The position numbers and the translations under genes were made by a program. From assembly GCA_004764695.1 (NCBI GenBank), contig SMSO01000034.1, forward strand, positions 2,046,001-2,110,000: DNA of 64,000 nt, read 5' to 3'. Below, piece after piece: positions 1-2,927 of this stretch (positions are counted from its first letter, which is position 1; each line of letters opens with the position of its first letter). The notes under the pieces were generated by a model, which worked only from the letters and a program-made list of their open reading frames with translations, was not told the origin of the DNA and did not search any database. The stretch is from Schizochytrium sp. TIO01 (lineage: Eukaryota > Protista > Bigyra: Labyrinthulomycetes).

Positions 1-2533
1 ACAATAGATGCACGCACGCATACATGGACGTGAGTGATCTAGGTTGGCTTTCAGCATTTATCTTTGTTGTGTTGTCATTTTGCTCTTTGTCCGATGGATA
101 TATACTCACTCAAACAAACAACTCATCCATCCATCAAACAAACAAGCGATTGCATAAACTTGCTTGCCAAAACAATCCCGACCCACCCACCAAACAACAA
201 ACCAAGCATCATGTATAAACAAGTCCACGAGCTGCGCTGTTGCGTAGACAACTTACGATAGTGATGTCAGCGACCGGTTCTCTTTCAGCGCCGCAGCCAC
301 TGCCTTGGCGCCCTCATCGCCGATATCGTTGCCTCCAAGACTGTCGATTTGATTGAATGATGGCAAGCAATACATTACACGTTATATATTACAATATAAG
401 CACGCATGCACGCATGGACGTGAGTGATCTAGGTTGGCTTTCAGGATTTATCTTTGTTGTGTTGTCATTTTGCTCTTTGTTCGATGGTTGTATACTCACT
501 CAAACAGACAACCCATCCATCCATGAAACAAACAAGAGATTGCATAAACTTGCAAAACAACACCGACCCACCCACCAAACAACAAACCAACCATCATCTA
601 CAAACAAGGCCACGAGCTGCGGTGTTGCGTAGACAACTTACTTGAGTGATGTCAGCGACCGGTTCTCTTTCAGCGCCGCAACCACTGCCTTGGCGCCCTC
701 TGAGCCGATATCGTTGACCGAAAGACTGTCGATTTGATTGAATGATGGCAAGCGATACATTACACGTTACATATTACAATAGATGAACGCATGCATGCAT
801 GGACGTGAGTGATCTAGGTTGGCTTTCAGGATTTCATCTTTATTGTGTTGTCATTTAGCTGTATGTTCGATGGATGTATACTCACTCAAACAGACAACTT
901 ATCCATCCATCCATCCATCCATCCATCCATCCATCCATCCATCCATCCATCAAACAAACAAAGAAGCAATTGCATAAACTTGCAAAACAACACCGACCCA
1001 CCCACCAAACAACAAACCAACCATCATCTACAAACAAGGCCACGAGCTGTGGTGTTGCGTAGACAACTAACTTACTCAAGTGATGTCAGCGACCGGTTCT
1101 CTTTCAGCGCCGCAGCCACTGCCTTGGAGCCCTCGTCGCCGATATAGTTGCCTTCAAGACTGTCGATTTGATTGAATGATGGCGAGCAATACATTACACG
1201 TTACATATTACAATAGATGCACGCATGCATGCATGGACGTGAGTGATCTAGGTTGGCTTGCAGCATTTATCTTTGTTGTGTTGTCATTTTGCTCTTTGTT
1301 CGATGGATATATATTCACTCAAACAGACAACCCATCCATCCATCAAACAAACAAGCGATTGCATAAACTTGCAAAACAATACCGACCCACCCACCAAACA
1401 ACAAACCAAGCATCATGTATAAACAAGTCCATGAGCTGCGGTGTTGCGTAGACAACTTACGATAGTGATGTTAGCGACCGGTTCTCTTTCAGCGCCGCAG
1501 CCACTGCCTTGGCGCCCTCTGAGCCGATTTTGTTCCACGAAAGACTGTCGATTTGATTGAATGATGACGAGCAATATATTACACGTTACATATTACAATA
1601 GATGCACGCATGCATGCATGGACGTGAGTGATCTAGGTTGGCTTTCAGCATTTATCTTTGTTGTGTTGTCATTTTGCTCTTTGTTCGATGGATGTATACT
1701 CACTCAAACAGACAACCCATCCATCCATCAAACAAACAAGCGATTGCATAAACTTGCAAAACAACACCGACCCACCCACCAAACAACAAACCAAGCATCA
1801 TGTACAAATAAGTCCACGAGCTGCGGTGTTGCGTAGACAACTTACTCAAGTGATGTCAGCGACCGGTTCTCTTTCAGCGCCGCAGCCACTGCCTTGGCGC
1901 CCTCTGAGCCGATCTGGTTGCGTTCAAGACTGTCGATTTGATTGAATGATGGCAAGCAATACATTACACGTTACATATTACAATAGATGCATGCATGCAT
2001 GCATGGACGTGAGTGATCTAGGTTGGCTTTCAGCATTTATCTTTGTTGTGTTGTCATTTTGCTCTTTGTTCGATGGATGTATACTCACTCAAACAGACAA
2101 CCTATCCATCCATCAAACAAACAAGCGATTGCATCAACTTGCAAAACAACACCGACCCACCCACCAAACAACAAACCAAGCATCATGTACAAACGAGTCC
2201 ATACGCTACGGTGTTGCGTAGACAACTTACACAAGTGATGTTAGCGACCGGTTCTCTTTCAGCGTCGCAGCCACTGCCTTGGCGCCCTCGTCGCCGATAT
2301 CGTTGCCCCAAAGACTGTCGATTTGATTGAATGATGGCAAGCAATACATTACACGTTACATATTACAATAGATGCATGCATGCATGCATGGACGTGAGTG
2401 ATCTAGGTTGGCTTTCAGCATTTATCTTTGTTGTGTTGTCATTTTGCTCTTTGTTCGAAGGATGTATACTCACTCAAACAGACAACTCATCCATCCATCA
2501 AACAAACCAGCCATTGCATAAACTTGCAAAACA
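1..2533. repeat. Tandem array of ~385-bp units (84-nt LRR exon + ~301-nt intron), about 6.5 copies visible
   Basis: Units start at about 1, 391, 776, 1210, 1595, 1980 and 2365. Spacing is mostly 385; one unit is 434 because of a (CCAT)n expansion at ~901-950. Confidence 0.97.
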
Positions 2534-2927
2534 ATAACAACAAAAGCAACACCGTGCAAAGCAAGCAAGCAAGCAAGCAAGCAAGCAAGCAAGCAAGCAA
2601 GCAAGCAAGCAAGCAAGCAAGCAAGCAAGCAAGCAAGCAAGCAAGCAAGCAAGCAAGCAAGCAAGCAAGCAAGCAAGCAAGCAAGCAAGCAAGCAAGCAA
2701 GCAAGCAAGCAAGCAAGCAAGCAAGCAAGCAAGCAAGCAAGCAAGCAAGCAAGCAAGCAAGCAAGCAAGCAAGCAAGCAAGCAAGCAAGCAAGCAAGCAA
2801 GCAAGCAAGCAAGCAAGCAAGCAAGCAAGCAAGCAAGCAAGCAAGCAAGCGTGTTAACTTACTCTAAAGTTGTAGCGCCATTCTGAAGCTTTTCAAGAGC
2901 AGCGAGAACACTTGGGTCGTCCGACAT
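257..2927 (-). CDS. LRR protein (RI/NLRC3-like 28-aa repeats), one LRR per exon; 3' part runs off the left window edge
   Basis: Exons: 2927-2863 ([25 protein letters not shown]), then 84-nt exons 2314-2231, 1929-1846, 1544-1461, 1159-1076, 725-642, 340-257. Each LRR exon is flanked by cgacAG| and |GTAAGT and all introns are phase 2. Spliced product: [28 protein letters not shown] / [28 protein letters not shown] / [28 protein letters not shown] / [28 protein letters not shown] / [28 protein letters not shown] / [28 protein letters not shown]. No stops, and it fits LxxLxLxxNxIGxxGA. Confidence 0.93.
2559..2850. repeat. (AAGC)n microsatellite, ~73 units, inside intron 1 of the LRR gene
   Basis: Perfect tetranucleotide run. 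It produces the spurious SKQA/LACL ORFs. Confidence 0.98.

Follow-up and report, generated by a model that had tools for sequence, protein, structure and literature searches.

The left edge of the window analyzed here, a stretch of 64,000 nt from Schizochytrium sp. TIO01 (contig SMSO01000034.1, called C33 below, positions 2046001-2110000; the genome is 64 Mb in 37 contigs), carries a 385-nt tandem repeat that raises a simple question: is it satellite DNA, or is it the body of a gene? Tandem Repeats Finder reports a period of 385 with 6.4 copies at 1-2534, and the unit has a published counterpart. In the preprint of Collier et al. (10.1101/2023.06.15.545109) on Aurantiochytrium limacinum, a 63.7-Mb long-read assembly with 45% GC and 26 chromosomes is described, with TTAGG telomeres and, on almost every chromosome end, 18S-28S clusters and 5S genes. 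About 9 units of about 385 bp separate the 18S gene from the 5S gene closest to it; they are termed LORE-TEARS Group 0, were found to have no similarity to GenBank sequences and were proposed to serve chromosome-end upkeep. Neither leucine-rich repeats (LRRs) nor leucine are mentioned in that preprint, and our literature search found neither the LORE-TEARS term nor an LRR family in Aurantiochytrium beyond it.

The published reading has its attractions. The unit has a regular place between 18S and 5S genes, with G-quadruplexes nearby, and is present in at least 398 copies that are ~95% alike and spread over many contigs. A non-coding subtelomeric spacer satellite used for chromosome-end or ribosomal DNA (rDNA) upkeep could have arisen by amplification of one LRR exon together with its intron, in which case the open frame and the splice-like sites would be leftovers. 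The original prediction, made from the letters of the window, had claimed the opposite, namely that the 'satellite' is an LRR gene built from cassettes, with one LRR on each 84-nt exon. This is what we find: the 385-bp Group 0 'spacer' is the body of an unannotated, expressed and spliced LRR gene family. The commonest class of 'long repeated spacer' at Aurantiochytrium chromosome ends is thus made of genes rather than spacer DNA, and in the 'universal subtelomeric rDNA' unit the interval from 5S to 18S is occupied by a protein-coding gene. The warning that repeat maskers would hide the gene was also apt, in that the literature calls its unit a non-coding spacer.

An intron-rich LRR gene on the minus strand

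The repeats at the edge of the window belong to a real protein-coding gene, rich in introns and read from the minus strand, of which this stretch makes up the 5' third. The complete gene is 8.9 kb long and consists of a 65-nt start exon, 20 LRR exons of 84 nt and a terminal exon; it runs from an ATG at 2927 to a stop codon left of the window, at L023:4031-4029, and in its predicted product of ~690 aa a 21-aa head and a 111-aa tail enclose the 20 LRRs. The start exon (2863..2927, minus strand) holds 21 codons plus 2 nt, ends in GA before the donor GTAAGT, and encodes no signal peptide. It had been proposed from the window alone and turns out to be real, being conserved in paralogues: all 12 of the paralogous start exons checked are 65 nt long with a GTAAGT donor, and the ATG comes first in 11 of the 12. 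The 83 nt 5' of the ATG are conserved along with the start exon, at 87-96% identity in at least 40 places in the genome. Intron 1 (2315..2862, minus strand, 548 nt) closes with the tail common to the array introns and holds a perfect (GCTT)73 tract, which on the plus strand is a perfect (AAGC)73 microsatellite at 2559-2850.

Six LRR exons lie in the window, all on the minus strand, at 2231..2314, 1846..1929, 1461..1544, 1076..1159, 642..725 and 257..340. Each has the form AG/84 nt/GTAAGT, with an acceptor side that reads ...CGACAG, and the first three match the Pfam family LRR_6 with E values of 1.6e-4, 8.3e-4 and 4e-5, respectively. The introns between them (1930-2230, 1545-1845, 1160-1460, 726-1075, 341-641 and, in part, 1-256) were said to be near-identical, and array introns are indeed 93-98% alike, both within and between arrays. 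Their modal length is 301 nt, rising to 350 nt where a (GGAT)n tract is expanded. The spacing of LRR exons in the window is accordingly 385 nt with a single exception, a 434-nt unit explained by (ATCC)12.8 at 901-951 in its intron.

The array continues past the window edge, as predicted, with 14 more in-frame LRR exons down to C33:2040649, and these contain no stops or frameshifts, nor do any of the 20 exons in total. The last intron has a distinct tail ending ...TTTTTACTGATCCTTAG and is followed by the terminal exon (L023:4365-4029, equal to C33:2040365-2040029, minus strand), which encodes 111 aa (MSDGLTDEMYKELELNKQIC...) and then TAG. Every 84-nt exon is phase 2-2, with 27 whole codons and one codon split across the junction, and thus specifies one 28-aa repeat. 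As the start exon leaves 2 bases and each 84-nt exon takes 1 and leaves 2, the reading frame survives any number of exons. Within the gene, modules 9 and 10 are identical, as are modules 16 and 17, both pairs being duplications, and modules 1-2 are similar to modules 15-16.

To judge the exon pattern across the family, 229 family exons were located by their conserved core alone, blind to splice sites. An AG acceptor is present in 229/229, and the donors 84 nt further on read GTAAGT in 225 cases, GTGAGT in 2 and GCAAGT in 1. The exon is exactly 84 nt long in 228 of the 229, the remaining one having a 1-nt insertion, and 227 are intact. None of these 227 has a stop in the coding frame, compared with 102 and 226 stop-bearing exons in the other two frames; at the hypervariable codons 2, 3 and 5 alone, ~40 stops are expected from base frequencies and 0 are observed. 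Half of the units deviate from the modal length through intron indels, whereas the length of the exon stays fixed. This pattern of exon length, splice sites and frame is far from chance. The two aberrant exons (G000:C36:2325694 and G000:C29:16375) are one with a GC-AG intron (GCAAGT) and one with the 1-nt insertion, which lies in a G run and could mark a pseudo-exon or be a homopolymer error of the long reads; both belong to a special last-exon type ending ...KVNWSLTLL.

Single LRR exons match LRR_6 (PF13516, ribonuclease-inhibitor (RI) type) with E values of 4e-5 to 8e-4, and the repeat fits the 28-29-aa RI-type form LxxLxLxxNxIGxxGaxxLaxaLxxNxxL. Two natural family products, P0009 and P0002, also match LRR_6, P0009 at 1.1e-23, and the nearest solved structures to P0009 are ribonuclease inhibitor, LRRC34, GALA and NLRP LRR domains. 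Vertebrate NOD and NLRC3 genes use 84-nt exons that encode one LRR each. The label 'NLRC3-type' given in the original prediction is, however, valid for the repeat class only and fails for the domain build: the exon-by-exon Pfam search found no NACHT, NB-ARC, kinase, ROC-COR or other known effector domain in the gene, including its leftward part. With no NACHT domain, the gene is not an NLR. The start exon and the tail are likewise free of a signal peptide, a hydrophobic N-terminus or a membrane segment.

Extension of the gene to the left, where an effector domain had been anticipated, yielded only the 111-aa tail, which is helical and without known relatives. Its AlphaFold model has three helices (3-47, 50-60 and 71-106) with a mean predicted local distance difference test score of 72. 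A search against 1.84 billion protein representatives returned only three real matches to the tail, all fragments from MMETSP transcripts and JGI data; family fragments among the representatives are 105-267 aa long. A fourth match, to a 2338-aa insect protein, involves a 24-residue stretch repeated eight times and looks unrelated. No relatives of the tail were found in metagenome contigs. Among the paralogues (terminal exons L025-L053), the tail is a mosaic of alternative blocks mixed in different ways, such as ELELNKQIC versus ERQFNKEIY and VINNVF...AWPANSFGELSP versus VVNDAL...TWPVNSSNELSS. The helical tail may act as a coupling or assembly module.

A spliced gene family linked to ribosomal RNA genes

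Contigs of four public runs, three guessed to be RNA and one DNA-like, were aligned to L023:3600-5140. In the three runs guessed to be RNA, the two LRR exons are covered 11-130 times more deeply than the introns, whereas in the DNA-like run the depth is equal. All 12 of the listed back-joints leave just as many unaligned letters as a direct junction of exon end 4649 with exon start 5111 or 4732 requires, and one contig has base 4365, the first of the tail exon, joined to the 3' end of an LRR exon. Two protein records extend the picture. P0005, an MMETSP transcript product, reads through an intron tail and one LRR exon, then E, then MSDGL..., so that the last intron has been cut out precisely where predicted (GA|A). 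P0009 (267 aa) comes from a diverged member on C35, 1.5 kb upstream of an 18S gene, and represents a run of its 84-nt AG/GT exons joined to one another and to the tail exon. The spliced minus-strand products that the original prediction called for thus exist, and the junctions seen in transcripts are the predicted ones, at the level of the family rather than specifically at the window locus. The tail matches of 35-58% identity beside 18S genes are members with other intron lengths (180-280 nt on C35).

The array is not a single gene but part of a family. The 385-nt unit recurs at 93-98% identity on most contigs, and the terminal exon has 101 genomic matches at 33-97% amino-acid identity, nearly all of them open. 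Start and terminal exons form 34 pairs, which delimit genes of 2.3-8.9 kb with about 4 to 21 modules, the window gene being the longest. In all, the family has about 100 paralogues constructed in this way, which are subtelomeric and lie near ribosomal RNA genes.

This linkage is evident on both sides of the gene. A full-length 5S rRNA gene (3385..3503, plus strand; Rfam RF00001, 96.5 bits) lies divergently 458 nt upstream of the ATG, and the spacer between the two (2928..3384) contains the 5' untranslated region and, presumably, the promoter. A divergent 5S gene on the opposite strand is found 370-540 nt from the start exon at no fewer than 12 paralogues. At the other end, paralogous tail exons lie 1.5-3.7 kb upstream of 18S genes in the same orientation. 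The window copy does not directly adjoin an 18S gene, the nearest (C33:1991670-1993456) being ~47 kb away.

On the 14 large contigs, 39 of the 78 tail exons lie within 100 kb of a contig end, in 4.5% of the sequence, and 31 of these 39 face the end. The remaining 39 are grouped inside the contigs, in 13 convergent clusters that in some cases include head-to-head 18S genes; in the C33 cluster these are at 1964464-1966250 (plus strand) and 1991670-1993456 (minus strand). Contig starts bear (CCTAA)n, that is, TTAGG telomere repeats as in A. limacinum, which the genome most probably represents. The large contigs appear to be chromosomes joined end to end, because 14 contigs with 13 joins would separate into 27 segments, a number near the 26 chromosomes reported for A. 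limacinum, and the window gene would then be subtelomeric as well.

A second set of LRR exons lies further inside the window. At 29565-33105 on the minus strand, just upstream of a long open reading frame (ORF) at 26548-29187 (minus strand), ten more 84-nt AG/GT exons of the same phase encode diverged RI-type repeats separated by short, unlike introns. The one-LRR-per-84-nt phase-2 exon is therefore an old architecture in this organism, and the 385-bp-unit family is a young, homogenized offshoot of it.

Hypervariable codons and exchange between arrays

The introns of the family record exchange. Over 159 aligned units, intron identity is 0.958 between neighboring units, 0.956 within arrays and 0.949 between contigs, and for 125 of the 159 units the best-matching intron belongs to another array. 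For the units of the window gene, the closest introns are mostly on C36, C3, C13, C35, C31 or C25. Exons and introns are kept ~95% alike across chromosomes. The likeness of introns across arrays, the duplicated modules and the mosaic tails fit a process of unequal crossing-over and ectopic conversion. The array was called recombinogenic in the original prediction, and both the intron relationships and the spread of module numbers among paralogues agree with this.

Against this homogenized background, variation is concentrated at a few exon sites. Nucleotide diversity (pi), computed over the same aligned units, averages 0.050 in introns (median 0.037) and is about 0.03 at conserved exon sites; it reaches 0.37-0.73 at exon nt 5-10, 14-16, 23-25 and 82-84. 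These sites correspond to five hypervariable codons per repeat, the split junction codon and positions 2, 3, 5 and 8, which are x positions of LxLxxNxIGx. In the canonical LxxLxLxxNxL motif, the x positions belong to the beta strand and the following loop and face the concave, ligand-binding side. By analogy with this motif, the hypervariable sites map to the predicted concave ligand face. Hypervariable residues are ~90% S, D, N, G, Y, R, E, K, Q or W, with aliphatics at ~5%, and position 8 is a two-state S/D switch. The 227 intact exons comprise 205 distinct sequences and 192 distinct hypervariable signatures, none of which occurs more than 4 times, and there is therefore no fixed repeat-by-repeat pattern common to the paralogues.

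Candidate roles and known counterparts

The build of the family and the placement of its variation make it probable that these spliced, hypervariable LRR genes, homogenized by exchange between subtelomeres, are used as a germline binding repertoire, most likely for non-self recognition. Unequal crossing-over and ectopic gene conversion between subtelomeres would homogenize the scaffold and the introns, and the same events could add, drop or move modules without loss of frame. Selection for diversity, or a targeted mutational process, would keep the concave-face residues different. The outcome would be a set of germline-encoded binding proteins, cytosolic or nuclear, that covers many specificities and whose likeliest use may be the recognition of variable non-self ligands, for example viral ones. 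Since the gene lacks a known effector domain, a receptor or immune function is a proposal, though a reasonable one.

A fuller version of this proposal can be put forward only tentatively. The ~100 rDNA-linked subtelomeric LRR genes might constitute the germline repertoire immune system of a unicellular stramenopile, in which intracellular binders with concave faces diversified by selection, and with modules exchanged between chromosome ends by recombination in the homogenized introns and possibly varied by exon skipping, recognize variable invaders such as persisting mirusviruses. The rDNA placement would here be part of the mechanism; location in the rDNA unit could bring frequent exchange between ends and perhaps position-dependent expression.

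Several observations weigh against the use of the family as a recognition repertoire, or against parts of the evidence on which the gene model is built. The transcript support is at family level and comes from short contigs of runs whose RNA status is guessed. P0005 begins inside an intron, which indicates a retained intron or an assembly artifact, and as it shares no more than 84-90% identity with any genomic locus, it may be a chimera or derive from another strain. In the runs guessed to be RNA, the depth over the last intron is similar to that over the terminal exon, maybe through unspliced RNA or DNA carry-over. The tail is without a match in Pfam, in the PDB by Foldseek, or in the Atlas. 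Within the exons, the synonymous third base of Leu27 (in the region of exon nt 80-84) is hypervariable too, with a pi of 0.67, and is tightly linked to the junction dinucleotide (CTT-GA in 68, CTC-AA in 56 and CTA-TC in 53 of the 227 exons). This linkage points to old maintained types or to short conversion tracts, and the linked Leu27/junction types, together with the S/D switch, mean that part of the diversity consists of old maintained types. There is also no clear third-position excess of change at conserved codons, and purifying selection at those codons is therefore indistinguishable from homogenization.

The linked states at the junction and at position 8, with a synonymous site among them, are also what would be seen if the genes encoded expressed LRR proteins with a housekeeping role, be it nucleolar, rDNA-linked or flagellar, whose variable codons are tolerated surface positions and old repeat types. 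Other RI-type LRR proteins, among them LRRC34, DRC5 and RanGAP, have structural or regulatory functions, the genes sit within the rDNA unit, and the absence of an effector domain suits such a role as well. We nevertheless regard it as unlikely. The diversity at the five codons is ~15-fold above that of neutral-looking introns, and relaxed constraint alone is insufficient to explain such an excess under shared homogenization. Position-specific conservation between paralogues, moreover, is lacking among the 192 signatures of the 227 exons, stops and aliphatic residues are avoided, and a housekeeping protein would hardly be expected to have ~100 copies that differ in module number.

The same variable LRR family could instead serve recognition within the species, in mating, allorecognition or contacts between cells or ectoplasmic nets, rather than defense against pathogens. 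Hypervariable recombining repeat families do underlie the allorecognition NLRs of fungi, but the lack of a signal peptide or membrane segment in the start exon and tail makes direct recognition at the cell surface unlikely, while leaving intracellular allorecognition unaffected; overall, we consider this use rather improbable. The pure-satellite reading set out at the beginning is rejected as scarcely credible, since the exon is held at 84 nt while introns drift in length, in-frame stops are missing where about 40 would be expected, splice sites are kept in 227 of 229 exons, the arrays begin with a conserved ATG start exon and end with a terminal exon that is intact, joined exons and products of spliced transcripts have been found, and an exon without function would not show, precisely at its ligand-face codons, 15 times the diversity of its intron.

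A germline binding repertoire of this kind has partial counterparts elsewhere, the closest described system being the ROCO LRR arrays of brown algae (Zambounis et al. 2012, PMC3341825; Teng et al. 2024, PMC11378527). These have one LRR per exon, exon shuffling, positively selected concave-face residues and alternative splicing of LRR exons, and they are regarded as candidate immune receptors. Both systems are found in stramenopiles and use one LRR per frame-keeping exon of equal length, and both appear to have an excess of variation at exposed residues of the beta-strand face (here a pi of 0.37-0.73 compared with ~0.05). The brown-alga exon is, however, 72 nt long and encodes 24 aa of a plant-type repeat, in contrast to 84 nt, 28 aa and the RI type in the present family, and the ROC-COR GTPase of the former has no known effector counterpart in the latter. 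The genome-wide homogenization of introns, the ~100 genes, their subtelomeric location and their pairing with 5S rRNA genes are further differences.

The likeness to LORE-TEARS Group 0 lies in the 385-bp unit, the copy number (4-21 here, up to about 22 published), the linkage to 5S and 18S genes, the subtelomeric location and the TTAGG telomeres. Group 0 was published as non-coding, whereas the units described here are exon-intron cassettes that encode LRR_6 repeats and are spliced; the ~47 kb between the window copy and its nearest 18S gene is a further departure from the published arrangement. The 28-aa LRR_6 repeat is shared with the RI-type LRR domains of ribonuclease inhibitor, NLRC/NLRP proteins and LRRC34, but unlike NLRs the present family lacks NACHT, PYD and CARD domains and has its own helical tail instead. 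Lamprey variable lymphocyte receptors similarly combine LRR modules with a hypervariable concave face and draw on many cassettes; they are assembled somatically from intron-less flanking cassettes, while the genes described here are complete in the germline and contain introns. Subtelomeric contingency families, such as Plasmodium var and trypanosome VSG, are also large chromosome-end families that exchange sequence between non-homologous chromosomes. Those families encode surface antigens of parasites, in contrast to a predicted intracellular LRR family in a free-living osmotroph.

The family would represent a second, independent stramenopile case of cassette-exon LRR diversification, in a host that is culturable and transformable and that harbors persistent mirusviruses. 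Its presence in a culturable, transformable protist makes the idea of diversified recognition repertoires in unicellular eukaryotes testable. It also exposes a failure mode of annotation, in that genes of this kind escape ORF finders of the prokaryote style and are hidden by repeat maskers and short-read assemblies. The other published LORE-TEARS classes, Groups 1, 2, 3 and 5 (406, 366, 529 and 421 bp), may hide exons too.

Contigs C1 (289,439 nt) and C2 (275,050 nt) of the assembly are near the size of the two mirusvirus-like elements of A. limacinum (about 300 kb and 269 kb). Elsewhere in the window, a tRNA gene lies at 26254-26325 on the plus strand (Rfam, 66.4 bits), and a PROPPIN/ATG18 gene is 71% identical to that of the thraustochytrid Hondaea fermentalgiana.

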